Positions 1 to 36,872 of a DNA stretch of 64,000 bases are shown piece by piece; position 1 is the first letter of the stretch, and each line of letters starts with the position of its first letter. The stretch lies in the IMG/VR virus record IMGVR_UViG_3300046787_000286, positions 124,001 to 188,000 of that record. The stretch is one strand, 5' to 3'. The notes under the pieces are model-generated. The model had not been told where the DNA came from and made no database searches. It was given only the letters and a program-made list of their open reading frames with translations. The translations under genes and the position numbers were made by a program.

Positions 1-1
1 A

Positions 2-2317: not shown

Positions 2318-3001
2318 TTATTTAGCCACGATCTGCTTGGTCTGCCGTGTGATATTAGGCACAACCATGTTCAGGAACAACAGCTCGCCGTCATTGTTGT
2401 GATCAATGAAGAAGTGGGCATGTGTCCAGTTTATCCACCAATTCTTAGTAGGAGTGTTGACCCAGTCTTTTAATCCCGGGCCCATACGTACATTCTCACG
2501 TGCCTTCAAGTATTCAACTAGTGTATTACGTTGGGAATCGTCGATTGCTTTGGATCTAAAATAAGTCCTATGAGTCCATTTTGGATCGTATAACGCAATT
2601 GTGCCCACTGGGCAAATTTGATGTGCTTCCTGTATTTGTATCTTGTCAAGAGTTGGCAAGTAATACAGTGTTTTTACTAAATCAAAGTCATTGGTATAAA
2701 CATACCCACGATCATAGGAAACTACAAACTTTAGTTGCTCTTTGTGACGAACTAATAAGCGACACAACTCCTCAAGGTTCTGTTGCATTCCTGAATCAAT
2801 CCGATGCATTTGAAAGCTGCCGCCGTAAAGCTGTTTGTGTTCTGTCCGCCAGCGATTACGCTCCTGTACTAATTTATCGATCTTATCAGGGTTCAGTCCC
2901 CTGATAATCCCGAGCTCGCGCAAATCAAATCTAACACTGTATCTGTATTTCCCGAAGAAAGGTTGATTGGTTTCCACGGGTTTTACTTTAAGGTTGGACA
3001 A
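2318..3001 (-). CDS. hypothetical protein
   Basis: 227 aa ORF overlapping clpA stop. Confidence 0.75.
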   Translation of the reverse strand: MSNLKVKPVETNQPFFGKYRYSVRFDLRELGIIRGLNPDKIDKLVQERNRWRTEHKQLYGGSFQMHRIDSGMQQNLEELCRLLVRHKEQLKFVVSYDRGYVYTNDFDLVKTLYYLPTLDKIQIQEAHQICPVGTIALYDPKWTHRTYFRSKAIDDSQRNTLVEYLKARENVRMGPGLKDWVNTPTKNWWINWTHAHFFIDHNNDGELLFLNMVVPNITRQTKQIVAK

Positions 3002-5231
3002 TTGTCAAACCCTCGACGGAAGTTTCTACAGTTTCAAACGCAATATTGTCACCGTCTAAGTTAGCAACTACAGAGCAATCACGCAGGTTATCAAACAAGA
3101 TCTTCTTTGATAATGGCACACGGATCAACTCATCAATCTTGCGTGACAGTGGACGAGCACCCATCAGCGGATCGTAACCCTTGTCTGCTAGATAGTCAAC
3201 AACACTTTCGCTCAGTGTGAGTTTGATGTTCTTGGTGTTCAAGCTAGTTTGCAGTTCATCCACAAACTTAACAACAATCTTCTTGATAGCAAGTTTATCC
3301 AACTTGCCAAACTTACAGATCTTGTCAATACGGTTACGCAGTTCTGGACGGAAGAACTCTTTGAGAGCTTTGTCATCTTCGCCTGTTTTCTCTTGCCCAC
3401 CAAAACCAATGTTTAGACGTTCACTATCCTTGGCACCCAAGTTTGATGTCATGATAATGATTGTGTTCTTACAGCTCACAGTCTTACCATTTGAACTTGT
3501 GATGCGACCTTCGTCTAGCATTTGCAAGAAGATGTTGACCACATCAGGATGTGCTTTTTCAACTTCGTCAAACAACATAACAGCATAAGGGTTCTTGGTC
3601 AAGTCACTGATCAACTTGCCACCGCCTACGTTACCGTCTTCAAATCCCACATAGCCCGGAGGAGCACCAATCAAGCTACTAACTGTGTGACGCTCTTGAT
3701 ACTCACTCATATCGTAGCGTAACAGTGTCATGTCCAGATTATCTGCCAACAACTTAGCAAGTTCTGTTTTACCTGTACCTGTTGGGCCCAGGAACAAGAA
3801 GCTAGCAATAGGTTTCTTGTCGTTACCGATACCTGAATAGTTAATGTAAACACGTTCCAGCACTGTGTCCACAGCAGAGTCTTGTCCGTAGAGCTTTTGC
3901 TTGATGTTAGTTTCGAGCTCCGCAATGTTAGCAGAGCGCTCGTTTTGCAACTTGTCTAACGGAATACCCAAGATCTTGCTAACTTGCTCTTCGATCATGC
4001 TCTTGGTAACGGAAACGTTGCCTTGGTCCTTAACACGTTGTCTAGCACACGCACCATCGATGAGATCGATTGACTTATCGGGATTCTTTCGATCATGAAT
4101 ATATCGGCCCGATAGTTCCACTGCGGCGGTGATAGCTTCAGTTTCGATGAGGACATTATGAAAAGTTTCGAGTCGGGGAGAGAGCCCAATGAGAATCTGT
4201 TCTGTTGTACTAGGAGTTGGCTCATCAATGGCCACGCGATGGAACCTACGCATAAGGGCTCGATCTTTCTCAAAGCTCTCGTAATATTCTTCCCATGTAG
4301 TAGATGCAACAACTTTTAGGTTTCCTTTGGTAATTGCTGGCTTGAGCATGTTGGCAAAGTCTAACGAACTGTTATTGCCTGCACCTGCACCTTGCATGGT
4401 GTGAGCTTCGTCGATGAACAAGATGCAGTTTTTCTTTGCTTCCAACGCACCGATCACAGCACGGAACTTTTCTTCAAACTCGCCGCGATATTTAGATCCT
4501 GCAAGCAATGCAGAAATCTCAAGACTCCACACCTCGTGATTCTTCAAGAACTCAGGTACATTGTTATTGTTTACTTCTTGCGCAAGACCTTCAATGATAG
4601 CAGTTTTACCAACACCAGGATCGCCTACCATAAGCACGTTTGCTTTAAAACGTCGAGCCAACACAGTGATCATTTCTTCTAGCTCTTTGCTTCGACCGAT
4701 CATGGGCTCTAATCGATTTTCTTTAGCTAGTTTGGTTAAGTTAGTGCAGTGCTCACTCAAGATCTCACTTGCTTGATCTGGGCTCAACTTTTGAGCTTCT
4801 TCGTGTGCATAATGCTTTTGCCAGAATGCCACAAACTCACGGCTCTTGACACCGTACTTGAGCAAGAAATATTGTGCATGACTATTGTGTTCGGCCATGA
4901 TAGCCAAGTACAAGTCGATAGTAGTTAATGTAGTTCGGCCGGTAAAGGATACTTGTGTAAATGCGCGATTAATAACACGCACTAGAGCCTCAGTCTTCTT
5001 GGGCTTTGTAATGTCCATTTTAACTAGATTAACCAAGCTATCCAGGTAAGCACCAAGCTCTGATTCAAACTGCTCACTTGCTACGCCAAATTTATCTAGG
5101 CATTTTCTAAACGGGGCATGTTGTAGCATAGCCATTAACAAATGCTCTGTAAGCATGTATTCATGATTGCGAACATGCGCTAATTTAATAGCTGAGTCGA
5201 TGATTTGTTCAATTTCGGGATTGTTTTGCAT
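2988..5231 (-). CDS. clpA: ClpA-type AAA+ unfoldase
   Basis: Clp N-domain (EHLLMAML), Walker A GDPGVGKT and GPTGTGKT, Walker B LFIDEAH and LFDEVEKAH, IGF ClpP-docking loop, no ClpB middle domain. Confidence 0.93.
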   Translation of the reverse strand: MQNNPEIEQIIDSAIKLAHVRNHEYMLTEHLLMAMLQHAPFRKCLDKFGVASEQFESELGAYLDSLVNLVKMDITKPKKTEALVRVINRAFTQVSFTGRTTLTTIDLYLAIMAEHNSHAQYFLLKYGVKSREFVAFWQKHYAHEEAQKLSPDQASEILSEHCTNLTKLAKENRLEPMIGRSKELEEMITVLARRFKANVLMVGDPGVGKTAIIEGLAQEVNNNNVPEFLKNHEVWSLEISALLAGSKYRGEFEEKFRAVIGALEAKKNCILFIDEAHTMQGAGAGNNSSLDFANMLKPAITKGNLKVVASTTWEEYYESFEKDRALMRRFHRVAIDEPTPSTTEQILIGLSPRLETFHNVLIETEAITAAVELSGRYIHDRKNPDKSIDLIDGACARQRVKDQGNVSVTKSMIEEQVSKILGIPLDKLQNERSANIAELETNIKQKLYGQDSAVDTVLERVYINYSGIGNDKKPIASFLFLGPTGTGKTELAKLLADNLDMTLLRYDMSEYQERHTVSSLIGAPPGYVGFEDGNVGGGKLISDLTKNPYAVMLFDEVEKAHPDVVNIFLQMLDEGRITSSNGKTVSCKNTIIIMTSNLGAKDSERLNIGFGGQEKTGEDDKALKEFFRPELRNRIDKICKFGKLDKLAIKKIVVKFVDELQTSLNTKNIKLTLSESVVDYLADKGYDPLMGARPLSRKIDELIRVPLSKKILFDNLRDCSVVANLDGDNIAFETVETSVEGLTIVQP

Positions 5232-5280
5232 ATTTTCCAGTTTGAAAGTTATGTGTTAATTATACGCTACCCTGAAATAT

Positions 5281-6069
5281 TTAGCGACCTGTTTGTTGCC
5301 GAATTAGTGCTAATAGATCTTCGGGTATGTTTCGGGGAATTTCTGCTTGTAATCGAATCATCATGTCCCCGGGATTTCGGGATCGATCCGGTAAACCTCG
5401 CCCGCGACAACGAAGGATTTGACCTGGTTGTGTCATTGGCGGAATGGCAACGTTTAGTTCACGATTTAGGATATCCTTGACCATGATGTCACCACCTGCA
5501 ATCATGGTCCAAATATCAACCTTTTGGTCAGTGTACAGGTTGTACCCATCGCGTTGCCATTTTGGATTTGGGTGAATTCTAAATGTGACCACTAGATCTA
5601 CACCACCAGGTGCTAGCCCCGGGTACATTACCGACGCACCATCTTCTACGCCAGGCGGGATATCAATTTCTACAATTTGACTACCGGAATGACTGCCCAC
5701 ACTAACAGTTCGTTTTCCACCGGAAGCTACATCACTTAACTGAATCCATAAACTCATTCTAGCCTGGGCAGGCCGTCGTTGTTGGTTATGATTAAACTGT
5801 GCCCCAAACATGTTGAAGATGTTGTCAAAGTCAAATGGTTGCCCACCTGCTTGACGGAAACCAAATTGACCAAAGTCGGGACGCGGAGTATCGTGTGCTG
5901 CACGTTGCTCTGGGTCACTCAGTACACGATATGCTTCTTCAAGCTCTTGGAATTTGGCCGTGTCGCCGCCTTTGTCCGGATGAAATTTTGATGCCAGCCG
6001 TCTATACGCCTGCTTTATTTGTTCCGGAGTTGCAGACTTATCAACCCCAAGTGTTTCATAGTATTTCAT
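5281..6069 (-). CDS. dnaJ: DnaJ/CbpA-type J-domain chaperone lacking the zinc finger
   Basis: YYETLGV...HPDKGG J domain, G/F-rich linker, DnaJ C-terminal domain. Confidence 0.92.
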
Positions 6070-9574: not shown

Positions 9575-10561
9575 TTAACCGCGTTCTGGAAAATAGTCTA
9601 CAATACTACTTTGCCTGCGTATGTCTACTGTAATGCAGTGCATGCCGCCGTCCCAAAATCCACGACAACGGAATGGTACCCAATGCACTGTGATACCGCG
9701 TTCACTTAGTGTCTGCTCTAGTGCCCCATTATAGCCCAGCATCATTACAGTGGATTCGTTTATTACCAAACAGTTTAGTTCGAAGAATGTTTCTGTGTAA
9801 TCGCCTACCCAGTCTTGAGCATGCTTGATAACATGCTCGTTGAAACTGCGATTTAATTCAACGCCTTCTGCATAAAACTTACCATTGTATTCCCCGCCTA
9901 CAGGGGGTGTAGTTCTGTGATTCCAGTATGTGGATTCACTTAAAAAGATACATTCCCATCCTGGAAAATTACGTTCGTACCCATCATAGTAATGGTTAGC
10001 AATGATCAGTCCTGGCTTGAGAATAGCAAAGCAGCCGTCCATGTGGCCGCCATTCTTTTCCCAGGTGATTCTGTAGTCTTTAAAAAGATTTAAATTGAGC
10101 TCTGGTGCGTCAAATATATCAGTATCAATAACAATATCTTTGCCTAGTCGCACAACATTGGCGCCATTGATAACGTGATTTGCACCAGGTGCAGTTTGTT
10201 TGTTGTATAACGCTAACGTGCTACGCCACGCTGCGCCTGCGTTGTATGGCGTTAGTAATGTGTTGCCCACTGTTAGAAATGTATCTCTAGGACATATCTC
10301 AGGCTTAGTTAACACACCATTTGAGTCAACAAAATCATTTATGTTGAGGTATTCCGGACGGCGTACTGTGATACCAAATGATTCTAATTTGCTTTGTATT
10401 ACAGCCAGGTCCTGTTTTGTTATTTCAGTTATTTTATAAAATACATCACGCACAGCAGGATCTAAATGATCGTACCAGGAACTGGGGTATACATCTCCAA
10501 GCCAGACTTCTTCCAGTTGACTCCATGAATTGTGACTGTTAATCAATACAGGTCTTTCCAT
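9575..10561 (-). CDS. amidinotransferase (pentein fold; glycine/inosamine amidinotransferase-like)
   Basis: NSHNSWSQLEEVWLG, CPRD, HMDG, GGMHCITVDIRR motifs. Confidence 0.85.
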   Translation of the reverse strand: MERPVLINSHNSWSQLEEVWLGDVYPSSWYDHLDPAVRDVFYKITEITKQDLAVIQSKLESFGITVRRPEYLNINDFVDSNGVLTKPEICPRDTFLTVGNTLLTPYNAGAAWRSTLALYNKQTAPGANHVINGANVVRLGKDIVIDTDIFDAPELNLNLFKDYRITWEKNGGHMDGCFAILKPGLIIANHYYDGYERNFPGWECIFLSESTYWNHRTTPPVGGEYNGKFYAEGVELNRSFNEHVIKHAQDWVGDYTETFFELNCLVINESTVMMLGYNGALEQTLSERGITVHWVPFRCRGFWDGGMHCITVDIRRQSSIVDYFPERG

Positions 10562-11760
10562 TTATCTACTAGGTAGTTCTTTAGATCCACTGGGGTCTTT
10601 ATGTTGTTTTGGCGCATGAAGTTGTTGATCTTTGCAGCACTAGCGTAGTCTGCATTACCGGGCTTGCGGGCATTGCTTAGATCAACGCCTAACCCGTCGT
10701 CTTCATTTCTATAGCCCTGTCCGTACACTATAAGACTCTTTAGTTTGCGCTGAGCCGACGGAGTTAGTTCTGTCTTGGCTTTTTTATAGATCAATTCCAG
10801 CCAGTCTTCCAAATAGTTACGACTCGGACTAAATGATCTGCGAACCGGCTGCGCACCTTTTAGCAACTCGCCTGCTTGAGCTGGGCTAACTGCTTTTCTT
10901 TTATCCTGTAGTTTCCAAGCTGTTTCGTCTGTGTATAAGAACGCAGGAATACCTTGTTTCTTTGCTGATAGTAATACTGTGCGCACTTCTGGTGAACGAT
11001 TTTCCATTTGTTCTTTTAACAGCACATGAACTTCTCGAATGCTTTCTGCATTAGCAGGGATAGCAGGAGTTCGACTATACACACGGTCTTCTGCTTCTCT
11101 AGAACGTGTGCCATCTGAGTGCAGCCATGAACGATTCCAATAATCAATGGGCCTTGTTTTGTAGTTGTTGTTTAGCCAAGAGCCATTCAACACAAACATC
11201 GCAGCTGAACTGCCCACATAACGATTATGGTAGTCCCCTACTCGTGTTCTTGTGGTGCTTAGGAAATAAGGATAGCCAGGAATCTCATAGTCCTTTTCAG
11301 CTTGTGTTCCTGTAGAGCTTGCTAGTAGAAACTCTCCAGAAGTTAGGATACGTGCTGCTGCTGCGGTATTTGTATAGTGATACAAAATAGCCGACGCTGC
11401 TTCTGTTAATTGTTCTTCTTCCCACACACGTTCTTCACCGCGATGCTTGTCCCAGAAATTCGATCCAGCATCAGTTTGGTCAAAACTTCTGTTGATACGG
11501 TACCCGTGAGTTTTTACGAAATCATACATCACTCGAGCAACACCTTGCCCACGATACTGGTCTTTGATAAACAAATCTTGCGCTTCTAAATCATACATGT
11601 CAGTTACTTCGAAAGTAACATGGCCGATCTCTCTACGGCCAGATGGGTCATACACAGTTACAATGACTTCGTCATCGCCCTCGACTATTCTGAATCTAAG
11701 CCCACTAAACTCTTCAGTGGGTTGCTCTTTATATTCTACAATGAATTCTGCTGCTCTCAT
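10543..11760 (-). CDS. putative head-packaged protein: leader + GNAT acetyltransferase + ADP-ribosyltransferase-like domain
   Basis: Start MRAAEFIVE 5 nt after TAAATA; GNAT motif A YRGQGVA; linker EEQLTE; ART-like LYHYT...FLSTTR...EAEDRV. Confidence 0.7.
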   Translation of the reverse strand: MRAAEFIVEYKEQPTEEFSGLRFRIVEGDDEVIVTVYDPSGRREIGHVTFEVTDMYDLEAQDLFIKDQYRGQGVARVMYDFVKTHGYRINRSFDQTDAGSNFWDKHRGEERVWEEEQLTEAASAILYHYTNTAAAARILTSGEFLLASSTGTQAEKDYEIPGYPYFLSTTRTRVGDYHNRYVGSSAAMFVLNGSWLNNNYKTRPIDYWNRSWLHSDGTRSREAEDRVYSRTPAIPANAESIREVHVLLKEQMENRSPEVRTVLLSAKKQGIPAFLYTDETAWKLQDKRKAVSPAQAGELLKGAQPVRRSFSPSRNYLEDWLELIYKKAKTELTPSAQRKLKSLIVYGQGYRNEDDGLGVDLSNARKPGNADYASAAKINNFMRQNNIKTPVDLKNYLVDKWKDLY

Positions 11761-11768
11761 ATTAATAT

Positions 11769-12263
11769 TTAATTGCTTTGATAAGTTGCACCATAGCCAA
11801 CCCAAGCAGGTGCGGTGTATCCTTGGGGATATGCTTGAAGATGTTGTATAGTACGATGCCAACCTTCAATCAAGTCATACCCATTATTTAATTTAGCAAC
11901 AATAATAGGTTCTTCACTTACACCGGTTTGTTGAATCATTTTTAATTGCTGTGCGTGACGTTCTGCATCTTTTGGTACTTTATATGGATTAGCCAAACCG
12001 CCTTCGCGACTGTGAATCATTTGTTGTGTTTTGGGTGTAAAAATGTCTAGTGTGATAGGTAGCTTTTGTAAACGCCATTGTACTTGACCAAAGTCTTGTT
12101 TATTTCTTTTTAGAAAATCATCTAGTTCAGCTTGGCTTCTAATACCTTTTGCTTGTTGGTATAAAAAGTCTTTTAACACGTAATCAGGCCAGGTGGGAAA
12201 CTGTTGCTTGACATAAGCAAATAATGATCCCCTGGACTCTGTTAGGAATTCTTGTGCTCTCAT
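11769..12263 (-). CDS. putative head-packaged ParB/Srx-like domain protein
   Basis: Leader MRAQEFLTE; PIIV...YDLIEGWHR ParB-N motif. Confidence 0.7.
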   Translation of the reverse strand: MRAQEFLTESRGSLFAYVKQQFPTWPDYVLKDFLYQQAKGIRSQAELDDFLKRNKQDFGQVQWRLQKLPITLDIFTPKTQQMIHSREGGLANPYKVPKDAERHAQQLKMIQQTGVSEEPIIVAKLNNGYDLIEGWHRTIQHLQAYPQGYTAPAWVGYGATYQSN

Positions 12264-12264
12264 A

Positions 12265-12882
12265 TTACAACACCCAAGGATCGTTAATTACAGGCGTGCC
12301 ATTGGCTCGCATCATGATGTTGCCATCGTGCAAATCCCAGGCGTAGCCAGCACGGTCGCCTATAGCTTCAAGTTTCCGAGCAGTCTTTAAAAATTGTGTG
12401 ATACCCTCTACACCAAATTGCTTTATTAATTTGGCGTAGGTGTTGGGGTTTGTTTCTTGAACATGTCTAAGAGTAGTCTTTATTGAATCGTAGTCTATTA
12501 CGTCTGACACCATGCCCGATAACACAGTACCTACTGAACCTGAATCCTTTAGCGGCTCTGTGCGAATCATTAGATAGCGATGTTTTTCATCGTCGTCCCA
12601 GGGATGCCAAAAGAAACTTTCGTGTCCATAAAATCTTGGCAAGAACGGATTTGATTGATTCTTCTCGCAGAACTTGTACCATCTAAAGAACATTTTATGA
12701 TCTTGGCTGAACTGAGCTGTTTCGCCTGTGCCAAATATCTTTAAGACATGCCCTGTACCGGGTTCCATAAATGCAGTTTGGTCCACGCCTTGACCTAGGT
12801 ACTTGTAGCCTTTCTTTTTCAAGGCATTGATTACAGACTGGTCTGTTTCAGAATATTCGTCTAAAAATTCGTGAGATCTCAT
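12265..12882 (-). CDS. putative head-packaged protein-kinase-like enzyme
   Basis: Leader MRSHEFLDE; LGQG glycine loop, VLKIF, DLHDGNIM catalytic loop, INDP. Confidence 0.75.
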   Translation of the reverse strand: MRSHEFLDEYSETDQSVINALKKKGYKYLGQGVDQTAFMEPGTGHVLKIFGTGETAQFSQDHKMFFRWYKFCEKNQSNPFLPRFYGHESFFWHPWDDDEKHRYLMIRTEPLKDSGSVGTVLSGMVSDVIDYDSIKTTLRHVQETNPNTYAKLIKQFGVEGITQFLKTARKLEAIGDRAGYAWDLHDGNIMMRANGTPVINDPWVL

Positions 12883-13184
12883 TTCACACCTTCGAATATT
12901 CTTTTCTGTATCGCATACCATTCCTGCCACTGATCTACTTTTACAGCACATTCGTAATAGGTTGAATAGTTTGTAACTACTGTAGACGTTAGTCCACTTA
13001 GCTTCACGTCATTGGGGACGGTTTGTAGTTGTGGGCACTCACCTAGTCCTAGTCTAGGAGCATCAGGAAACTTTGCTGAGACAGGAACAGTTGTAGAACA
13101 ACCAGTAATAGCAAGTATTACCATGATAACTAGTGCAAAAATAATTACACTAGATACAATTTGTTGATCCTGTTGATTTTTCAT
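12879..13184 (-). CDS. lipoprotein, o-spanin (Rz1)-like
   Basis: Lipobox ITGC, Pro-rich periplasmic part with two further Cys; near i-spanin and endolysin. Confidence 0.65.
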   Translation of the reverse strand: MKNQQDQQIVSSVIIFALVIMVILAITGCSTTVPVSAKFPDAPRLGLGECPQLQTVPNDVKLSGLTSTVVTNYSTYYECAVKVDQWQEWYAIQKRIFEGVK

Positions 13185-13185
13185 A

Positions 13186-15126
13186 TTAGCAGTTCCAACG
13201 TCTACGTGCTTTACAAATTGCTTTGTCTGGAGTTTTAGCACATGAAATATTGTGCATGTTCATTTGACCTTTGGAGCGTGAGCAGTAGCTCTTTCTGCGT
13301 TTGCTTGCTTTAGAGCCCTTCTTTAGTTTAGAAGGCTTGGTAGTAACTGCTGTTTGCAGCTTTGATCCAGGATTTGCTCTGCGATATGCTTTTACAGCCT
13401 TGCGACTCATGCCGTCTGTTCTGTCACTCTTGTTGGCTTTTTGCCAGTCTTCGTTCAACTGAGAAGTCACGGCAAACACATACAGTTCATCGTGTGATAA
13501 AGATTCTAAATCTTCCCAAATCATTTCGGGATCTACGCCATTATGATCTGCAATTCGGTTAATAGAAGATTCAATTAAATCAAATTCTTCCGTTAATTCA
13601 GGATCTATACCTTGTGCTTTTTCGCTTTGTAGATAATCCCATACTGTCACAAGATAATCTTCAGCCAGGCTGATCTTTTCTTGACACCATTCAGGCAAGT
13701 TATCGCGATCGTCGATCACTTGTTGCAAGCCTTCTACAGCATTCTTTAGTGTGTGCAAGCTGCCGTGTGCCATGCCTGCTTCGTCATCGTACTCGGCATT
13801 GTAGTCTTCTGCTGCGCCTTGCTCTGTGATCCCACCGTCGCTGTCAAATCTTGGCTGAGTTCTTCCTGCCTGACCGCCTTGGGTCATATTACGCCCATTG
13901 CTTGGTATTCTTTTGGGTCCAATGGCTGGCGGCGATTTAAACGCACGGTTGCTTAGTTTAACAGTAGTACGACCTGGCACAGTGCGATCTATTGCAAGCC
14001 CAGTTTTTGGATCATGGGCAGCTCGCGCATAAAATGCAAGCTCGTCTCTAGTAAATCCGTCTTTTTCTTGGTGTGGCTCTGCTAGTGCCGCTAATTGATC
14101 TTTAATTCGTTGGCGTTCTGTGCTATTGTTAGTTGCGTGTAATTGCTTTTGCAACAGATGTCTCTGGTATATACGCTCATGCTCTTCATCATCGTCGTTT
14201 AAGCCTTCCGCCACACCTTCTTTAGTCTTTAAGCGTTTGAGAACAGCCATGTTCTCAGGCTTGCTCATGGTTTTCTTCAATGCGTCCAGCGCACGATCCT
14301 GTATGGCTTTGCTAGTCATCATACTATCTGGACCAATATGAATGTCTGGACCATTACTTGTATTGTGCTTGTCTCTTGACCCGTATGTGCTATGTCTCTT
14401 ACGATTGCTACCGTCACGTCCTGCACCGTCGCCGTCCATTTCTTTGATCTTATTGCCTTGTTGGTCAATGCCCGAGTTTGGTGGAAGATATACCTGCTTA
14501 CATGGCATGCATACTTGAACAGCATGTCCCTGGTACTTGCCACCTTGTAAGTCTCCGCCGCACTTGGGGCATGTGTGCATGTGGGAAATATCGCCGCGAT
14601 GCTTCTTTGGAAACTGTACAACTTCGCCTTCCTCTACAGATTCTTTTGGAACACAGTTATTAACTCGCACCCCACCCTTGACTTTGGTCTTGGGATTGCC
14701 AATTTTTTTGTTGTCCCAGCAAGCAGGATCCAAGCGAACTTTTTCTTCCGCTACACCTTGCTCAATGATGTCACCGCGAGCTTTAGCAACTTTAAACAAT
14801 GCAAACAAACTATCCCAGTCATGGGTGTTATTCATTTTGTCTTTGTATAGCTGTTGCTTTTCTGGTTTAATCTTAGCTAGGAACTTGTGCTTCATGCTGT
14901 GATTAGACGGAAATCCTGAGTAGTCATTGCCCAAATCTTTTACAGTGTAATCAAAGCCTTCGTCAATTGTTTTTAACTGACTGCGCAACTGATCTGCCAT
15001 TTTTAAATGATGATCACGTTTGATATCTTTGCTCTGCTTGGCAGCTTTTTCGTGAGCAGTAATTTGTGCCCATAATGCGTTTTGTTTACGCTGGTCTTTG
15101 TCTTCGTTGATTTCGTCGAATCTCAT
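13186..15126 (-). CDS. multi-module polyprotein-like putative internal head protein (646 aa)
   Basis: Start MRFDEINE; about 9 dissimilar modules separated by IDE, QGVAE, SVEE, IKE, EGVAE, QGAAE, LTE, LNE. Confidence 0.75.
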   Translation of the reverse strand: MRFDEINEDKDQRKQNALWAQITAHEKAAKQSKDIKRDHHLKMADQLRSQLKTIDEGFDYTVKDLGNDYSGFPSNHSMKHKFLAKIKPEKQQLYKDKMNNTHDWDSLFALFKVAKARGDIIEQGVAEEKVRLDPACWDNKKIGNPKTKVKGGVRVNNCVPKESVEEGEVVQFPKKHRGDISHMHTCPKCGGDLQGGKYQGHAVQVCMPCKQVYLPPNSGIDQQGNKIKEMDGDGAGRDGSNRKRHSTYGSRDKHNTSNGPDIHIGPDSMMTSKAIQDRALDALKKTMSKPENMAVLKRLKTKEGVAEGLNDDDEEHERIYQRHLLQKQLHATNNSTERQRIKDQLAALAEPHQEKDGFTRDELAFYARAAHDPKTGLAIDRTVPGRTTVKLSNRAFKSPPAIGPKRIPSNGRNMTQGGQAGRTQPRFDSDGGITEQGAAEDYNAEYDDEAGMAHGSLHTLKNAVEGLQQVIDDRDNLPEWCQEKISLAEDYLVTVWDYLQSEKAQGIDPELTEEFDLIESSINRIADHNGVDPEMIWEDLESLSHDELYVFAVTSQLNEDWQKANKSDRTDGMSRKAVKAYRRANPGSKLQTAVTTKPSKLKKGSKASKRRKSYCSRSKGQMNMHNISCAKTPDKAICKARRRWNC

Positions 15127-15584
15127 TTCAGTTCCTTGTTCTCTGCCGCAGCATTGTGTGCCTTTACTACTGCACCGGGTATAACACAACTGTTGTCATA
15201 TCGGGCAACTTCTCGATCCACATATTGTTTAATTATGACACCTTTTTCTCGGATAATCTTAATCTTTTCTTTTCCCTTAGCAGCCAGTTGTTCGTTAGCT
15301 GCTTGTGATTGTTGTTCAGCCAGTGCTACTCGAGCTTCCATTTCACGCACACGTTCACGCCAGGACATTTCTGAACTATATCCACCTTGGAAATAAACGC
15401 CCGATAAAAGAACTACTACAGATACTACCTGTGCAATCTTTATGTGCGGTGCCAGTGTGGGAATTAATCTGATCACATGCTTTAGTAAAAAGCAAGTTAA
15501 CACAGTGGCTAGTATACCTGCAATGAGAACTGCATCTACTACAAATGCTAGAAAAGAGTCAGGAAGTAGATGCAGAATAAACAT
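15123..15584 (-). CDS. i-spanin (Rz)-like inner membrane protein
   Basis: N-terminal TM helices, coiled coil, late Cys; directly downstream of endolysin. Confidence 0.65.
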   Translation of the reverse strand: MFILHLLPDSFLAFVVDAVLIAGILATVLTCFLLKHVIRLIPTLAPHIKIAQVVSVVVLLSGVYFQGGYSSEMSWRERVREMEARVALAEQQSQAANEQLAAKGKEKIKIIREKGVIIKQYVDREVARYDNSCVIPGAVVKAHNAAAENKELK

Positions 15585-15587
15585 TGA

Positions 15588-16202
15588 TTATGCTCCGAAT
15601 ACGTGTAAGGCGTGTTCGTAGTGCTTGATACGATCTTCTAAACCAATGTAGCCACCATTGATGACTTTGGTCATTGTTTTGATATCGCCTGCGTCGGCCC
15701 ACTTGTTTAGATTGTTTGTTTCCCAGAACCAGCAGCCTGATTGCACAGCGCCTTCAAATGTTCCCAGGTATTCACTTACTTCTTCCACGGCTGTTTCGAT
15801 AGAGTCAGCAAAGTTTTGATAGTTGTTTTTGCCTGTTAGCTGAATCAATCCACGTCCGCAGTAGCGATAGCCGTCACCTGACTCTTCGGGACCATTGCCC
15901 ATTCTATTGGCATACACTCTGTTAGCAATCTTTTCGCCTTTGTTGGCGTACTGTGCAGCCGTAGCATCGTCGGGGAAATACTTGGGGAATACTTTTCTTA
16001 AACTAGCTGCTTTGTAGTTTAGGTTTTCTTTCAAGAACACATAGTTGCCTGATTCGTGTGCAGTTTGTGCAATAAAAGCTGCCACACGCTGCGGTGTATC
16101 AATTTCGTATTCTGGAAGAATTTCGTTTAGGGCATGTACCCAGTAATCTAAGTAAGCGTTTTTGCCAATACAGCTTTGTAGTTGTTCTTTTGTGATGTTC
16201 AT
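15588..16202 (-). CDS. GH19 family endolysin
   Basis: AAFIAQTAHES, ENLNY, YCGRGLIQLTGKNNY, TKVINGGYIGLEDR. Confidence 0.92.
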   Translation of the reverse strand: MNITKEQLQSCIGKNAYLDYWVHALNEILPEYEIDTPQRVAAFIAQTAHESGNYVFLKENLNYKAASLRKVFPKYFPDDATAAQYANKGEKIANRVYANRMGNGPEESGDGYRYCGRGLIQLTGKNNYQNFADSIETAVEEVSEYLGTFEGAVQSGCWFWETNNLNKWADAGDIKTMTKVINGGYIGLEDRIKHYEHALHVFGA

Positions 16203-17650: not shown

Positions 17651-18267
17651 TTCTTTTTCCGACTTGCGTGTTTAGTCACAGCATCTAATGGTTGTTCTGC
17701 CACTGAGTGAAAATACTTGGCGTTGGTATCTTCTTTTAGTATTTCATCAATTAAAGGATTGTTATAATCGATGGGGAATTCTAAATCTTTTTCCACTCTT
17801 TGTAGATACTGGCGCCCATATAAATGCAACAGTTCGTAACTTAAAAAGGTAGGCATTGCAAACTCTGAATATGCTGCTGTTGCTTGATCTAACGTAACAC
17901 CGCCGCGCACACGAGTTTCTTGATAATTGAGAATATTACGATCACGCCCTAGCACTGCGAATTTAACTCTGTGTCCTAGGTTCTGCACACCTGTTACAAA
18001 TGCTTTGAAATCAGGCACTGTAGGCGTGCCGTTATTCATGTAAGGCACACTCATTGAGGTAACGTGCCAGTCACTTACGCCCCACGGAGCAGACTTTAGA
18101 TCAGCAGGGTTTTGCCAGTAGTGTGCCCAAGGCTCTTCATCGTGGCCGATCCAGTAGTCAGAGTTTAAAGCACGCCAACCTAGAACTTGACGATGCAAAG
18201 CAAATATCTTGCTCCATAAATGATTTCCGGAACCTTGGGGACCTGTGAGAATTAATAGTGTTTTCAT
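17647..18267 (-). CDS. sulfotransferase-fold protein
   Basis: ILTGPQGSGNHLWS loop, AVLGRD, FLSYELL. Confidence 0.6.
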   Translation of the reverse strand: MKTLLILTGPQGSGNHLWSKIFALHRQVLGWRALNSDYWIGHDEEPWAHYWQNPADLKSAPWGVSDWHVTSMSVPYMNNGTPTVPDFKAFVTGVQNLGHRVKFAVLGRDRNILNYQETRVRGGVTLDQATAAYSEFAMPTFLSYELLHLYGRQYLQRVEKDLEFPIDYNNPLIDEILKEDTNAKYFHSVAEQPLDAVTKHASRKKK

Positions 18268-18920
18268 TATCTATAATTTAGCCACTGTATAAACTGTTCG
18301 GTTTTTTCTGTGCGAATTCCTGTTAATTGAAATGTTACTCTGGGATCATATCCTGCATTGGCTGTGCAGTGCGGAATATTCTGCCAATCAAATGTAGTAA
18401 TTTCTCCTGCACGCCATTGATTGTGATGATAATTTCCATATTCCCAAAACTGTCCAGGTTGCCAGTCTGTCAATTGAATCATTATTCGCATGACTGAGTC
18501 AGGATCTTCAGGAGCCCATTTGTACAGCTTGTCAATGTGCAAGTTCCATAACTCCCCGGGCAACTGCACATGTATACGATTCATACAGTTCTCTAGCCCA
18601 AAGCTGTCGGACAGCTTTTGCAATGAGTTTGGGATCTGCCAGTTTAGATGTGTAATAAGCATGTCAGTAGGGATTCCTACTCTGCTCATGTCGTATTCTT
18701 CAGCAGCTAATTCGTCAGGAGGTGCTTCGATTCCTTCACCTTTGTATCCACGTGTGGCCCAGGTAGCAGGTTTAGCGTTTGCAATAATGCCAGGCAAGTC
18801 TGCTTCCCAGTTAGGAGTAACATGCCCTAGATACTGTACCACATCCATTGGATTGTCTTTTCTACCTGAATTAAAGTGATAATCACTTTGTGCTCGCAAT
18901 GTTTCCCAATTTGATTTCAT
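18267..18920 (-). CDS. 2OG-Fe(II) dioxygenase (Asp/Asn beta-hydroxylase-like)
   Basis: LHID...PHCTAN...RVTFQLTG (HxD...H...R jelly-roll motif). Confidence 0.8.
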   Translation of the reverse strand: MKSNWETLRAQSDYHFNSGRKDNPMDVVQYLGHVTPNWEADLPGIIANAKPATWATRGYKGEGIEAPPDELAAEEYDMSRVGIPTDMLITHLNWQIPNSLQKLSDSFGLENCMNRIHVQLPGELWNLHIDKLYKWAPEDPDSVMRIMIQLTDWQPGQFWEYGNYHHNQWRAGEITTFDWQNIPHCTANAGYDPRVTFQLTGIRTEKTEQFIQWLNYR

Positions 18921-19549
18921 ATTACAGTTACCTTTATGTCGCTTTTGTTGTAGTTTTGTCTATATTCGCTGCCAGGGTATTGAATCCCAAGTGCATCGCA
19001 TAACTCTAGGTTGTTGCTTGGATGTTTTCTTGTGGATTTATAGTCCCAGATGGCATTTTGAATACTTTGATTTTGCCGATGTATAATTCCAGCCATGGTC
19101 TTGAAGTCTTGAAAATACTCGTGATAGTCCGGGTATGTGATATCAAAGTGCCCGCACTTTACCCACCAACCCAAGCAAGCATCATCGCCGCGATGTACCA
19201 TAACAACAGGAGTTTCAGGAAAGAGTTCTTTGAGATAGTGGATGTGATTTGAGAATACATGGCTTTTAATAATTCGTATACCTTGCGGTTCCGCAGATTG
19301 AAATGGTACAGCAAAGATGTTCTCCAGTTGTGCTTTGTTTAGCGTGGTTAAATCTTCGGGCAGTGAGCTGATCATTCCTGGGTCAAAATAAGCACCCAAA
19401 TGCATTAGTTCTCTTGTGCCCGAAGCGTCGTGATAATATGTCCACTCGTCCCTATAGTCCGAGCGGTCAATGTCCGACGAGTAATAAATGTTTTTCACAA
19501 CCGAGCTCCATTTAGAGCCCGGTGCGCCTGCTACAAAGACGTATTTCAT
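18917..19549 (-). CDS. sulfotransferase-fold protein
   Basis: VFVAGAPGSKWS, IIKSH, LKELFPETPVVMVHR. Confidence 0.65.
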   Translation of the reverse strand: MKYVFVAGAPGSKWSSVVKNIYYSSDIDRSDYRDEWTYYHDASGTRELMHLGAYFDPGMISSLPEDLTTLNKAQLENIFAVPFQSAEPQGIRIIKSHVFSNHIHYLKELFPETPVVMVHRGDDACLGWWVKCGHFDITYPDYHEYFQDFKTMAGIIHRQNQSIQNAIWDYKSTRKHPSNNLELCDALGIQYPGSEYRQNYNKSDIKVTVI

Positions 19550-20523
19550 TCTTTTGTCAAGTCAATTTTAGATAGCACAGGAATAAATGCAGCACGTAGC
19601 TCTGTCATGTGCTTGTACAAGCCTGCAGGAGTTAGTTCATCTTCTGCGTAGAAAATAACGTTGGCATCTGTGTATTCTTTATACTCAGGTGAACGAACTG
19701 CTGCTGCAAATTCCTTTTGATACCATGCTACAATATCTTTGTTAGTGCCTGGCGGCAATTGAATTGACCATGCAGCATACACGTTAATACCTGGAGCCAC
19801 AGTGTTTAGCAACGGAACCCGGGGAAACTGCGACATCTTTTGTGTGCCTGTAAACCCAATTGGCTTTACTTTACCTGCGTCGATCAGTGCCTTGGCAACT
19901 GCAATAGGCATGATACCAAATTCTGTGCCTACCTTGCCATCGTAGCTGGCAACTGATTGCACAGCTGGCATAGGACCGTTAAACTTAATGGGCTTTACTT
20001 GATCTCGATTACCACGGCCTTTTTCCATTAGGTATTCAAATGCAGTGCGATGTGCGCCACCGCCGATTGCTACATTAATAGGACTGGTTGCAGTGCGAAT
20101 TAAACGCACAAATTGTTCGGGTGTGTTAACATCGCTTTTGACTGATGCGACCAGCACCAAGGGTGATTTGCCCATGGTTAGTACATCTACGAAACTATCA
20201 AATTGGTATTTCTTTAAATTCTTTTCCCAAATATCATTTGTTACGTAGCTTGACATGTGCGATGGCAAGTTAATAGTGTGCCCATCATTAACTGCTTCTA
20301 GGAATTTATTATTGGCAATAACAGAGTCAGCTCCGGGAATGTTTTGCACAACATACACAAAGTTGGGGTTCTTTTTTTGCACAATTTCTGCTAGTTTTCT
20401 AAAGGCCATTTCATTGCCTGCACCGGGTGTGTTGCCAATGTACACAGTTACAGGCTTAGTGGGCTCCCAGGCAAATGCCAGCACAGGTACAAGCAGTGCA
20501 GCGATTAATAATTTTTTGATCAT
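19546..20523 (-). CDS. Bug/TctC tripartite tricarboxylate transporter substrate-binding protein
   Basis: Signal peptide, WEPTKPVTVYIGNTPGAG, VVQNIPGA, DGHT, GKVKPIG, FPRVP; 325 aa; AAGGAG RBS. Confidence 0.88.
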   Translation of the reverse strand: MIKKLLIAALLVPVLAFAWEPTKPVTVYIGNTPGAGNEMAFRKLAEIVQKKNPNFVYVVQNIPGADSVIANNKFLEAVNDGHTINLPSHMSSYVTNDIWEKNLKKYQFDSFVDVLTMGKSPLVLVASVKSDVNTPEQFVRLIRTATSPINVAIGGGAHRTAFEYLMEKGRGNRDQVKPIKFNGPMPAVQSVASYDGKVGTEFGIMPIAVAKALIDAGKVKPIGFTGTQKMSQFPRVPLLNTVAPGINVYAAWSIQLPPGTNKDIVAWYQKEFAAAVRSPEYKEYTDANVIFYAEDELTPAGLYKHMTELRAAFIPVLSKIDLTKE

Positions 20524-20577
20524 CGTTTAGTCTCCTTAAATAGTATTGAAAATCTAACGTATATATCAAAATTTCCT

Positions 20578-21297
20578 ATGAACACCAAAATTTTTAACCT
20601 TTTAACAAAAAATTTGCAGACTGCATTTAATTTGCCCAAGTATGCGAATATTTCTATCACGCCAGACACTGTGGTGCAGGACCTGCCCTGGACCCCTGCA
20701 CGTTATAGAAAGTTCAAAGACGCTGTGGAAGCAGAACTCAGCTTGCCCTGTGACTATGTGGGCTCACTGGCTTCTATAACACACGATCTAAGCGAGCGCT
20801 ACATACATAGATTCTTTGGGGAAATATGGAAACCCAGAACAAATGATTATGATTACACAGGTTGGCAATTAACAGATGAAATTAACGCTCTCAATCCTCG
20901 CAGTGTTCTTGATGTTGGCTGTGGCTATCATCCTTTTAAAGGTCGTATTCATAATCTTGTGGGCATTGATCCTTATAACAATTGTGCCGATTACATGGTT
21001 GATATTTTGGATTATGTTGGTAGTCATGATGTTGTTATTGCTCTAGGATCAATTAACTTTAATGATCGTGCAGAAATAGAATCACGCTTTGCAAAATGCG
21101 TAGATGTATTGGATAAAGGTGGGAAATTTTATCTACGTGCCAACCCTGGTATCACGCACAAAACAGGGCCGTATGTGGAAATCTTTAACTGGACGTTTGA
21201 AGTAGTTAAGGAATTTGGGGACAAATATAATTTACAGTTGGATACCTTTAAAAAGGACGCCAACGATAGATTGTATTTTGTTTACACCAAGTTGTAA
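20578..21297 (+). CDS. class I SAM-dependent methyltransferase with N-terminal ACP-like helical domain
   Basis: VLDVGCG motif I, GIDP, DVVIALGSINF, LDKGG; divergent from the Bug operon. Confidence 0.8.
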   Translation: MNTKIFNLLTKNLQTAFNLPKYANISITPDTVVQDLPWTPARYRKFKDAVEAELSLPCDYVGSLASITHDLSERYIHRFFGEIWKPRTNDYDYTGWQLTDEINALNPRSVLDVGCGYHPFKGRIHNLVGIDPYNNCADYMVDILDYVGSHDVVIALGSINFNDRAEIESRFAKCVDVLDKGGKFYLRANPGITHKTGPYVEIFNWTFEVVKEFGDKYNLQLDTFKKDANDRLYFVYTKL

Positions 21298-21965: not shown

Positions 21966-22595
21966 TTAGTGACCGTTGTTATGTAACCAGGCGCCTTTGT
22001 TAAAGCTGTTGCTCCAGCTTGCTGCATCTGCTCCGCCTTTGCGTTGGCTCCATTCGTAGCCTGCACGGTGTCCTGAACAGTCCTTGGTGCATTGCGAACC
22101 GCGGAATGTTAGTTCGTTTAATTGTGATTCATCTAGTTCATTGCCACTAAACGCAACAACATCATACGGGCCCCATGGATTGCCAGTGCGGCTGTCAATA
22201 TCATTACCAGCATCGTCGTAATCACTATATTCGTAATGATCATCGCTTTGAATCTCTACACCGTCAAAATTAGCATTGTAGCCAATGCTGTATTTGCGTA
22301 CTTTGCCGTCGCCACAATGAATACCACGCTCTAAGATGCGTTCTATATCTTCTTGGCTTTTGATGCCTGCATGTAGATCGCCTGTGTTAAATGTATCATT
22401 ATACCAAGCTGATGCTAGTGCTTTTAAATAGTTCCCGCCGGAACTGCTGCCACCTGGGGAAAATTCCGTTAAATCTTCATTCTTTTTGCGTCCAGCACAG
22501 TGAGCTTTTTGACTAAAGCCTTTGGGACTGGCACAATTGATAGAGCGCTTGTATTTTGCACTCCACTCTTCTGAAATGAATTCCGTTGCTCGCAT
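21966..22595 (-). CDS. three-module polyprotein-like putative internal head protein
   Basis: Leader MRATEFISE; junctions DLTE-FSPG and QLNE-LTFR. Confidence 0.7.
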   Translation of the reverse strand: MRATEFISEEWSAKYKRSINCASPKGFSQKAHCAGRKKNEDLTEFSPGGSSSGGNYLKALASAWYNDTFNTGDLHAGIKSQEDIERILERGIHCGDGKVRKYSIGYNANFDGVEIQSDDHYEYSDYDDAGNDIDSRTGNPWGPYDVVAFSGNELDESQLNELTFRGSQCTKDCSGHRAGYEWSQRKGGADAASWSNSFNKGAWLHNNGH

Positions 22596-36329: not shown

Positions 36330-36872
36330 TTACAGACGTTCGTTGCAAACGTCCCAGTTGATAATTTTCCAGATATTATCTAGGTACTTTTCTTTATCGC
36401 TTTGGTAGTCTAGCGCCCAGGCATGCTCCCACCAGTCTACTAGCACTGCAATATCTGTGCGAACTTGGTGATTTGGGATTGTTTTGATAGCACCACTAGT
36501 GCTCAAGTAGACCCACCCGGAACCTTGGATTTTCATTGCTTCTTCTTTGAACGCAATCTTGAAATCTTCGTAGGTTTTAAAGTGCTCTTCGATTAGCGTG
36601 AGTATTGCACCACGGGGTTTGTTTGCGCCCTTAGGAGCCCTAAGCTGAGGGAAGAACTTATTGTGTAAAAAACTGCCAGCACGATTAAAATTCGCATTAC
36701 CTTCTCCTGCGTTATAACGTTTTGCATAGCCCTTGGCTAGATGCTCATAGTGATAGTCAATTGTTTCTGCGCTCATTACAGGGTCAAGGTCTTTGACACC
36801 GTAGGGCAGGGGAGTGGTTTCCAGTTTTGCTGGACGGGTACTTGCTTCGATTAAGTCAATTTGTTCACGCAT
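36330..36872 (-). CDS. sod: Fe/Mn superoxide dismutase
   Basis: LPYGVKDLDP, HYEH, LHNKFF, QGSGWVYL, DWWEHAWALDY. Confidence 0.9.
   Translation of the reverse strand: MREQIDLIEASTRPAKLETTPLPYGVKDLDPVMSAETIDYHYEHLAKGYAKRYNAGEGNANFNRAGSFLHNKFFPQLRAPKGANKPRGAILTLIEEHFKTYEDFKIAFKEEAMKIQGSGWVYLSTSGAIKTIPNHQVRTDIAVLVDWWEHAWALDYQSDKEKYLDNIWKIINWDVCNERL

Follow-up and report, generated by a model that had tools for sequence, protein, structure and literature searches.

A jumbo-phage gene encodes nine mutually unrelated mini-proteins in a row, with a hydrophobic-x-Glu motif at the junctions that matches the cut site of the T4-type head protease and an N-terminal leader resembling the T4 capsid-targeting sequence (CTS). 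The gene lies at 13186–15126 on the minus strand of the window, the 64,000-nucleotide stretch of viral DNA that we analyzed, and encodes a single 646-aa ORF (72 kDa). More than 2,500 relatives carry these modules singly and in other orders, and none is colinear over the full length. We infer that the protein is probably packed into the phage head and cut into pieces there. The observation behind the original prediction, a polyprotein of about nine unrelated modules with Glu concentrated at the junctions, is confirmed by this analysis. Its interpretation, that the polyprotein is cut in the capsid into separate effectors and that linker DNA may serve as microhomology for swapping modules, is only partly supported.

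The ORF starts with an ATG at 15126 and stops at 13186–13188. A longer TTG start at 15189 is not used by orthologues, which all begin MRF[DN]EI with an ATGA overlap onto the upstream gene. The protein is identical to P0001 of our homologue set, seen on one 214-kb contig, whereas a near-identity DNA search of phage records with the gene found nothing. Every feature listed in the original prediction is present. The junction strings are INE (6–8), IDE (54–56), IIEQGVAE (120–127), ESVEE (162–166), IKE (227–229), KEGVAE (302–307), ITEQGAAE (433–440), PELTE (509–513), and QLNE (556–559), and [QE]G[VA]AE occurs three times. The motifs CW..KGG..NCVP and CPKC..CMPC are there, the acidic helical part has a pI of 4.1, and the last 87 aa have a pI of 11.0 with 4 Cys and 0 Glu. 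The nine segments show no similarity to each other (best pairwise E 0.15).

The leader (aa 1–8, MRFDEINE; 15103–15126) contains the candidate cut sites FDE and INE. Module N1 (aa 9–57; 14956–15102) is a predicted basic helical hairpin (pLDDT 89–96) ending IDE, found in 17 other upstream contexts, all with Glu just before the module. Module N2 (aa 58–127; 14746–14955) begins FDYT and comprises three helices plus the linker IIEQGVAE, whose DNA is GGTGTAGCGGAA at 14746–14757; 19 homologous copies lie at positions 1 to 639 of other proteins. Module CW (aa 128–166; 14629–14745) is a basic two-Cys peptide (EKVRLDPACW...NCVP) ending SVEE. It has 115 copies in 253 proteins, 40 of them directly after the N-terminal leader, and is also present in cyanophages DSL-LC02 and B23. 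Module ZN (aa 167–229; 14440–14628), zinc-ribbon-like beta hairpins ending IKE, has CPKC at 186–189 and CMPC at 206–209 with strands predicted at 192–206 (pLDDT 74–86). Its match to Pfam Zn_ribbon_TFIIB is weak (16.1 bits, E 0.0074, below the cut-off of 22), and all 39 of its upstream contexts have Glu before the module.

Module M5 (aa 230–307; 14206–14439) combines a disordered basic part with two helices, ends KEGVAE, and has homologues in other proteins; its linker DNA is GGTGTGGCGGAA at 14206–14217. Module M6 (aa 308–440; 13807–14205) is a helical hairpin (311–350, pLDDT 96) with a long disordered tail ending ITEQGAAE, and has only 2–3 homologues (P0164, P0170). Module AH (aa 441–513; 13588–13806), an acidic helical hairpin ending PELTE, is present in 109 of 120 homologues and in cyanophage S-WAM2. 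Module C2 (aa 514–559; 13450–13587) is an acidic three-helix unit (EFDLIE...) ending QLNE. The final module, D (aa 560–646; 13189–13449), matches Pfam DUF6321 (PF19846) above its gathering score (32.6 bits against 28.5, aa 568–644). It is always preceded by hydrophobic-x-Glu in polyproteins and stands alone in other phages. The whole ORF and each of these parts are on the minus strand.

To test whether the modules are independent, a check set out in advance, we searched for homologues of each. The protein had 2,521 hits among similar-length proteins, and aa 1–552 alone hit 2,572 clusters at 50% identity. Each module turns up alone at any position in proteins of 112–1,030 aa, and orders differ between proteins. 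The boundaries are not just compositional: BLAST alignment ends against 119 homologues pile up at residues 125–129, 166–168, 229, 433–440, 508–513, and 556–559, each within 3 residues of the Glu of a hydrophobic-x-Glu triplet. Only about 15% of positions lie that close to such a triplet, so we estimate the chance of six of six at about 1e-5. Structure prediction is consistent with this picture. AlphaFold gave confident islands with a pTM of 0.24 and all junctions in segments with pLDDT below 50, although the N-terminal modules were folded with a shallow alignment because 35 full-length homologues were used after a fragment-anchored MAFFT alignment misplaced the fragments. For the C-terminal block, pTM was 0.29 with dips at both junctions.

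We next examined the residues preceding the module starts. Over 465 distinct upstream contexts of the nine modules, P1 is Glu in 376 (81%, background 7.8%) and P3 is I/L/V/M/F in 344 (74%, background 20%). Positions P2 and P5–P8 are at most mildly off background, and P4 is enriched in Gly (23%), from the GVAE linker. The rule holds after QGVAE, LNE, IME, and ITE, and after the N-terminal leader. These contexts are not phylogenetically independent, and module starts were first set at the junctions of the original prediction, although the BLAST alignment ends were computed without them. This pattern is the L/I-X-E motif of the T4 gp21 (Peptidase_S77) prohead protease; T4 Alt is cut at ITE-6 and LTE-619. 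However, the acidic modules contain internal triplets of the same kind (AVE463, LPE477, LAE487, LIE517, IWE536), indicating that the motif alone cannot decide where cutting would happen.

The leader likewise resembles a known signal, by sequence only. Of 253 family members, 130 start with this kind of leader, and the consensus M-K/R-(I/A/F)-N-(E/D/Q)-(F/I)-(I/L/V)-(T/N)-E lines up with the T4 CTS MKTYQEFIAE, including the T4 residues mapped as needed for targeting (4 and 7) and for processing (8 and 10, where Asp blocks processing). Most cyanophage versions, in contrast, lack the N-terminal leader. Several neighboring genes on the minus strand also carry it. The gene at 12265–12882 starts MRSHEFLDE and has a kinase-like body, the gene at 11769–12263 starts MRAQEFLTE, and the gene at 10543–11760 starts MRAAEFIVE, followed by a GNAT-like module, the internal junction EQLTE, and a YHYT... 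module. A further modular gene at 21966–22595 starts MRATEFISE, followed by the WS.KYKRSINC module, with junctions LTE and LNE.

Comparison with L008, a locus from another phage, showed that leader and junction are interchangeable. In L008 one gene reads leader, GNAT-like, ELDE, kinase-like, and a second gene starts MRALEFLTE before its AATAIVYHY... body. In the window, the GNAT-like part is joined by EQLTE to that same body, and the kinase-like part, equal to the C-terminal half of the fused L008 gene, is a separate gene with its own leader. The same locus also carries different cargo. Between i-spanin and o-spanin, related phages have 384-, 525-, and 646-aa versions that share the leader and the last 210 aa but differ in their internal modules. 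Phage contigs with stand-alone 95-aa DUF6321 had no leader-bearing ORFs (0 in 13 loci), compared with 1.3 per 10 kb in the window's group, and the stand-alone forms also lack the E-DWQK start. DUF6321 works as a lone protein in phages that show no sign of this system.

We then asked whether phages carrying such genes encode a suitable protease. Kyanoviridae, which include cyanophage carriers, encode the Glu-specific S77 enzyme, and PA5oct, the nearest cultured relative by clamp loader (53% identity), encodes gp152, a PF03420 protein (E 5e-24) that is 44% identical to the cyanophage enzyme. Within the 64-kb window, part of a contig at least 214 kb long, tblastn with cyanophage and PA5oct portal, protease, scaffold, and capsid proteins gave no hits. 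Evidence for virion location comes from relatives only. The DUF6321 homologue S-CREM2 ORF137 and ORF136 are in that phage's virion proteome, ORF137 with only 4 peptides and 4.1% coverage. PA5oct gp150, encoded between portal and protease and detected by MS, starts MKINDIITE; it is the only leader-bearing ORF in the 95 kb of that genome examined, too few for an enrichment test to have power.

At the DNA level, GVAE linkers are encoded GGT GTR GCG GAA in 13 of 14 cases, although GCG is the rarest Ala codon. The 12-mer GGTGTRGCGGAA occurs twice in the window, both times in this gene, with 0.00 expected. Such conservation at synonymous sites is what a recombination microhomology would show. Junctions without GVAE (LNE, LTE, IKE, IDE) share no common DNA, however, so microhomology cannot be the whole story of swapping. 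Scans for expression signals were uninformative: the T4 late promoter TATAAATA had 0 matches in the window against 2.7 expected, a sigma-70 scan was at chance level, and a terminator scan gave 14 sites against 7.9 expected.

Searches for function assigned none to any module. Pfam found only DUF6321 and the sub-threshold zinc ribbon in the target, and PHROGs returned only unknown-function families. A profile search of the conserved C-terminal block against solved structures gave nothing below E 0.07, and Foldseek of its model against PDB gave nothing below E 1.5. Literature searches on DUF6321, on polyproteins with prohead protease, and on the CTS in cyanophages found no description of this family, within a collection that lacks most subscription journals; no paper in that collection mentions DUF6321.

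Taken together, we favor, with moderate confidence, a capsid-internal polyprotein of a jumbo phage with a T4-type head. In this view, the protein is made late, in one operon with the lysis genes, and the leader takes it into the scaffolding core of the prohead, as the T4 CTS does. A phage-encoded S77 prohead protease (T4 gp21-type) would then cut after Glu in the sites that end the leader and every module (FDE/INE, IDE, IIE/VAE, VEE, IKE, VAE, ITE/AAE, LTE, and LNE), releasing up to nine small proteins of 4–15 kDa. The basic pieces (N1, N2, CW, ZN, M5, and the very basic DUF6321) would stay with the packaged DNA and enter the host with it, and the acidic helical pair AH-C2 (net charge about -25) would probably neutralize or escort DUF6321 (about +22) before cleavage. 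New combinations would arise by recombination at or near the junctions, with the conserved 12-nt GVAE linker as one likely crossover site. The evidence shows the module structure, the shuffling, the junction and leader motifs, their interchangeability, and the virion presence of one homologue, whereas targeting, cleavage, and ejection are inferred, no cleavage product having been observed for this protein or any relative, and nothing shows that the pieces are effectors.

Two alternatives appear unlikely, to a similar degree. First, the protein could be cut by the head protease as a prohead core or scaffold-type component whose pieces are debris that leaves the head before DNA packaging, as with T4 gp22, gp67, and gp68. 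T4 core proteins are cut into many fragments that leave the head, the near-universal AH and C2 modules are acidic and helical like scaffold proteins, and PA5oct gp150 is encoded where T4 encodes core proteins. However, most modules are basic, Cys- or putatively Zn-containing folded mini-domains conserved at 65–97% identity across many contexts, which is unexpected for disposable scaffold. Differing cargo between close relatives at one locus better suits accessory cargo than an assembly part, and the S-CREM2 homologue is still detected in mature virions. Second, the protein may not be cut and may act as one long beads-on-a-string protein, the Glu-ending linkers being flexible spacers and scars of recombination. 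The DNA-level conservation of the GVAE linkers and the lack of direct evidence of cleavage fit this view. Yet junctions without GVAE (LNE, IME, LTE, IKE, FNE...) obey the same P1-Glu, P3-hydrophobic rule and share no DNA, the leader ends in the same motif and swaps places with internal junctions, and the motif equals the specificity of the protease these phage groups encode. Finally, we reject a RiPP-like precursor of secreted or modified peptides and consider processing by a host or other protease unrelated to the capsid very unlikely, because despite a layout of leader plus repeated recognition sites and a radical-SAM gene in the window (43736–45262), the modules are 39–133 aa, mutually unrelated, and partly folded, that gene is 30 kb away, the gene context is lysis and other leader-bearing genes, and a homologue is in virions.

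The closest known systems are the T4 internal proteins IPI, IPII, IPIII, and Alt, CTS-tagged head cargo cut by gp21. They share a short N-terminal tag of the same pattern ending hydrophobic-x-Glu, small and mostly basic products (here predicted), and accessory and variable genes; their phages encode an S77 protease, as do PA5oct and the cyanophage carriers, and T4 Alt is cut at both ends. T4 IPs, however, are single-module proteins cut once, whereas this protein joins nine modules with about ten sites, and its family is far larger and combinatorial. Pfam and PHROGs gave no IP or Alt family for the body, so the resemblance is functional and architectural rather than membership by descent. Inner-body and ejection proteins of phiKZ, 201phi2-1, and SPN3US are also head proteins of giant phages cut at several Glu sites by a gp21-related protease, but their motif is S/A-X-E, the cuts mostly trim propeptides rather than separate unrelated modules, and there is no homology. 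Polyvalent proteins of phages and conjugative elements (Iyer et al. 2017, PMC5512222) also place many unrelated domains in one mosaic polypeptide predicted to be packaged and delivered with the DNA. They are built from recognizable enzyme and anti-restriction domains, with any proposed processing by an embedded peptidase; here the modules are tiny and of unknown function, the punctuation matches the head protease's site, and Pfam detected no polyvalent-type domain, membership requiring two or more recognized conflict domains (ART, MPTase, ParB, methylase, helicase...) in one polypeptide. T4 gp22, gp67, and gp68 are cut into several fragments by gp21 and include acidic helical parts, but are essential, conserved assembly proteins that are not mosaic or variable between close relatives. 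Pfam DUF6321 covers only the last module and has no function.

A more speculative possibility, which we consider unlikely but not excluded, is that these phages run a cassette system at the level of protein modules. A dedicated linker DNA (about 12–15 nt, CAA GGT GTG GCG GAA), together with the leader-coding sequence, would act as a recombination site that lets any mini-protein be added to, removed from, or moved between capsid-delivered polyproteins, with the head protease site as universal punctuation that frees each piece. The result would be a fast-evolving, combinatorial arsenal of injected small proteins (for example, anti-defense factors) spread across aquatic jumbo phages and T4-like cyanophages.

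If the favored reading holds, the T4 rule of tagging, packing, and cutting has been scaled up in aquatic jumbo phages and cyanophages into large mosaic polyproteins, which also suggests natural tags and cut sites for loading cargo into such capsids. It would assign a role to thousands of so-far unexplained phage proteins, including DUF6321. The leader plus the hydrophobic-x-Glu punctuation would also give a simple sequence rule for predicting which phage proteins are carried in the head and delivered to the host, the set where anti-defense and host-takeover factors are usually found.

The gene is a single ORF on the minus strand, with its ATG at 15126 and its stop at 13186-13188, and it encodes a protein of 646 aa. 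The ATG overlaps the stop of the upstream gene (ATGA), and because orthologues begin at the same Met, a longer ORF with a TTG start is not the real one. The original prediction described a chain of about nine unrelated mini-proteins joined by Glu-rich linkers, and this observation held, with every sequence string it named present in the protein. We divide the protein into a leader (aa 1-8) followed by the modules N1 (9-57), N2 (58-127), CW (128-166), ZN (167-229), M5 (230-307), M6 (308-440), AH (441-513), C2 (514-559), and D (560-646). The nine modules show no similarity to one another. Six are basic (pI 8.2-9.6), AH and C2 are acidic (pI 4.1), and D has a pI of 11.0 with four Cys residues and no Glu. 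Pfam recognizes only D, as DUF6321, together with a sub-threshold zinc ribbon in ZN, and a PHROGs search returned only families of unknown function.

The window comes from a large phage, and the protein was seen on one 214-kb contig. The clamp loader is closest (53% identity) to that of the Pseudomonas jumbo phage PA5oct and its kin. The phage also encodes a 747-aa ClpB/ClpA-like AAA+ protein (window 2988-5231; phrog_4871, E 3e-242). In L008, a related contig, a DnaJ homologue sits next to this gene (17680-20760), and a 262-aa ORF occupies the matching position in the window (5281-6069). Two very large ORFs of 957 and 1,334 aa (33140-36013 and 59542-63546) had no PHROG match at E 1e-5. On the minus strand, the order of genes is a GH19 endolysin (15588-16202), an Rz-like i-spanin (15123-15584), the polyprotein gene (13186-15126), and a lipobox (LAITGC) ORF that looks like the o-spanin (12879-13184), followed by three genes whose products start MRSHEFLDE, MRAQEFLTE, and MRAAEFIVE. 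A cargo gene therefore splits the spanin pair, and the same order is found in two related contigs. A fifth leader-bearing gene lies at 21966-22595. Two more ORFs, at 1-1045 (minus strand, running off the window) and 36330-36872, have leader-like starts (MKKDFSMTE...ELNE then FAPGSG, and MREQIDLIE, respectively) and may belong to the same tagged set.

We next examined whether the modules occur independently of one another. A search of similar-length proteins gave 2,521 hits, nearly all of which share aa 440-646, whereas about half share CW and about a tenth share any other part. An exhaustive search with aa 1-552 hit 2,572 clusters at 50% identity, and each module was found alone, at any position, in proteins of 112 to 1,030 aa. 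The order of modules also differs between proteins: ZN can come before CW, CW can come after D, and D is not always last. Full-length colinear homologues folding as one unit had been named beforehand as grounds for rejecting a polyprotein, and no homologue is colinear over the whole length; the best cover two separate blocks, or a weak stretch of 44% identity. Alignment ends on the query pile up at 125-129, 166-168, 229, 433-440, 508-513, and 556-559, which are the junctions originally predicted.

To determine what precedes each module, we anchored on the modules with phmmer and read the upstream residues in 253 family proteins, which gave 465 distinct upstream 10-mers. The residue just before the module (P1) is Glu in 81% of these, against a background of 7.8%, and P3 is I/L/V/M/F in 74%, against a background of 20%. 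P2 and P5-P8 are at most mildly off background, and P4 is enriched in Gly (23%), which comes from the common GVAE linker. These contexts are not independent lineages, and most exceptions appear to be one-residue register shifts of our module starts. The rule holds whether the upstream sequence is QGVAE, LNE, IME, ITE, FNE, or the N-terminal leader itself. In T4-like cyanophage versions, DUF6321 is likewise always preceded by Glu, and almost always by a hydrophobic residue at P3. In contrast, stand-alone DUF6321 proteins of about 95 aa from other phages lack that N-terminal stretch altogether. DUF6321 occurs as such a lone protein of about 93 aa, without a leader and without the DWQK start, in small phages, including Pelagibacter phage HTVC100P (gp24; 2438-2719 of locus L005) and phage DSL-LC04 (2429-2713 of locus L006, just after the capsid and cement genes). 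About 30 more such loci are in IMG/VR, and only two of the four Cys are kept there. The junction motif is the stated specificity of the T4 prohead protease gp21, L/I-X-E, and T4 Alt is cut at ITE-6 and LTE-619. However, the acidic modules contain internal copies of the motif.

Of the 253 family proteins, 130 start with a short tag, and for the 9-residue form the consensus is M, K/R, I/A/F, N, E/D/Q, F/I, I/L/V, T/N, E. The T4 capsid-targeting sequence is MKTYQEFIAE, in which residues 4 and 7 serve targeting and residues 8 and 10 serve processing, with Asp at position 10 blocking processing. With a one-residue offset, the family tag keeps a hydrophobic residue, Phe/Ile, Ile/Leu/Val, and an invariant Glu at those four places. 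In family members a module often begins right after the tag, as in tag then EKVRLDP.CW, tag then NYNGEY (the AH module), and tag then DWQK (DUF6321 alone, 96 aa). Most cyanophage versions, however, lack the leader.

Comparison of related loci suggests that leader and junction are the same thing. Two related contigs, of 341 kb and 178 kb, have the same locus, and between the 153-aa spanin and the 101-aa lipoprotein they carry polyproteins of 384 and 525 aa. These share the leader and the last 210 aa of the window protein but have other internal modules, again joined by GVAE-type linkers. The downstream genes show fusion and fission. The leader-bearing genes (window 10543-12882 and 21966-22595, minus strand; L008 332-1399, 9038-9541, and 11459-13286) form a cluster whose products all start MRxxEF[ILV]xE, and the same domains (GNAT-like, kinase-like, and a YHYT... 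domain) are fused in different pairs in related phages. In L008, one gene reads leader, GNAT-like part, ELDE, kinase-like part, and the next gene starts MRALEFLTE followed by AATAIVYHY... In the window, the GNAT-like part is instead joined through EQLTE to AASAILYHY..., and the kinase-like part is a separate gene that starts MRSHEFLDE. A module's own leader in one phage is thus an internal junction in another, which is hard to explain unless both serve the same purpose. The domain at aa 117-405 of the 405-aa protein of this cluster (window 10543-11410) has homologues in many jumbo phages. Its weak structural neighbours include DarT, PARP, and ART-PolyVal ADP-ribosyltransferases (TM about 0.4, a lead only). 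In T4-like Vibrio phage K566 and in Salicola SCTP-2 it follows a short leader ending in Glu, whereas in Dickeya JA13 it has none.

Cyanophages and PA5oct provide a link to capsids and to the protease. In T4-like cyanophages (Kyanoviridae), the homologues lie between the small and large terminase genes, inside the structural block, and these phages encode the gp21-type protease. In S-CREM2, both genes in that gap were detected in purified virions by mass spectrometry, although coverage of ORF137 (the DUF6321 homologue) was thin, with 4 peptides and 4.1% coverage; ORF136 gave 8 peptides and 24% coverage. T4-like cyanophages also carry a conserved small gene next to the polyprotein (4960-5280 of locus L001 and the matching ORFs in loci L019, L024, L039, L042, L088, and L090). 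Its product starts MKSF.QF[LI]SE, very close to the T4 capsid-targeting sequence, and the virion protein S-CREM2 ORF136 starts MQTFSMFFSE. PA5oct gp152 is a Peptidase_S77 protein (E 5e-24) and is 44% identical to the cyanophage enzyme, but no protease gene was found within the window itself. PA5oct gp150 (2922-3143 of locus L094; MK797984.1 82921-83142) is a 73-aa virion protein found by MS and encoded between portal and protease. It starts MKINDIITE, letter for letter a family leader, whereas its body has no similarity to any module of the window protein. Finally, contigs of the window's type carry 1.3 leader-bearing ORFs per 10 kb, cyanophage loci carry 0.4, and loci with stand-alone DUF6321 carry none.

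The full-length AlphaFold model has a pTM of 0.24 and shows confident islands at 11-56, 75-120, 185-215, 311-350, and 444-555. The pLDDT is below 50 at 58-72, 124-132, 164-180, 229-270, 292-310, 374-443, and 553-571, which covers every junction, although the N-terminal modules were modelled with a shallow alignment. The well-aligned C-terminal block gives a pLDDT of 71 and a pTM of 0.29, with dips at both internal junctions. Judged from pLDDT and pTM alone, this prediction fits beads on a string with exposed linkers.

We also examined the DNA that encodes the linkers. In the window and in seven other contigs, 13 of 14 GVAE linkers are written GGT GTR GCG GAA, even though GCG is otherwise the rarest Ala codon in these genes, at 8-13%. 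The 12-mer occurs twice in the window, both times in this gene, with none expected, and in related loci it falls largely inside polyprotein genes. Conservation at synonymous sites across different flanks supports the original suggestion that the linker DNA matters for recombination. Shared descent of the linkers cannot be excluded, however, and junctions of the LNE, LTE, or IKE type share no DNA.

Taken together, the original interpretation, in which the polyprotein is cut in the capsid into separate effectors and the linker DNA possibly serves as microhomology for adding or swapping modules, is partly supported. The modules, their rearrangement, and the junction and leader motifs are observed directly, whereas late expression, targeting, cleavage, and ejection are inferred. 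In the mechanism we consider more likely than not, the protein is made late, its leader takes it into the prohead core, and the S77 protease cuts it after each junction Glu. The basic pieces would then stay with the DNA and enter the host, as T4 internal proteins do, although no module has a known function. The acidic AH-C2 pair (net charge about -25) sits next to DUF6321 (net about +22) in almost all relatives, and we infer from these charges that it may mask DUF6321 until cleavage. Two alternatives remain possible but appear unlikely, and to a similar degree: the protein could be cut for disposal, in the manner of a scaffold, or it could remain uncut, with the linkers acting as spacers and recombination scars. 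A capsid-independent precursor is very improbable.

We found no description of this family in the literature that could be searched. It resembles phiKZ and SPN3US head proteins in multi-site Glu cleavage, which here is inferred, and it resembles polyvalent proteins in its mosaic multi-domain cargo. It differs from both in the size and anonymity of its modules and in using the head protease's site as punctuation. On the mechanism proposed here, it would work like T4 internal proteins and Alt, which are tagged, packed, and cut after Glu, but it is not related to them in sequence, and it joins about nine cargo units instead of one.
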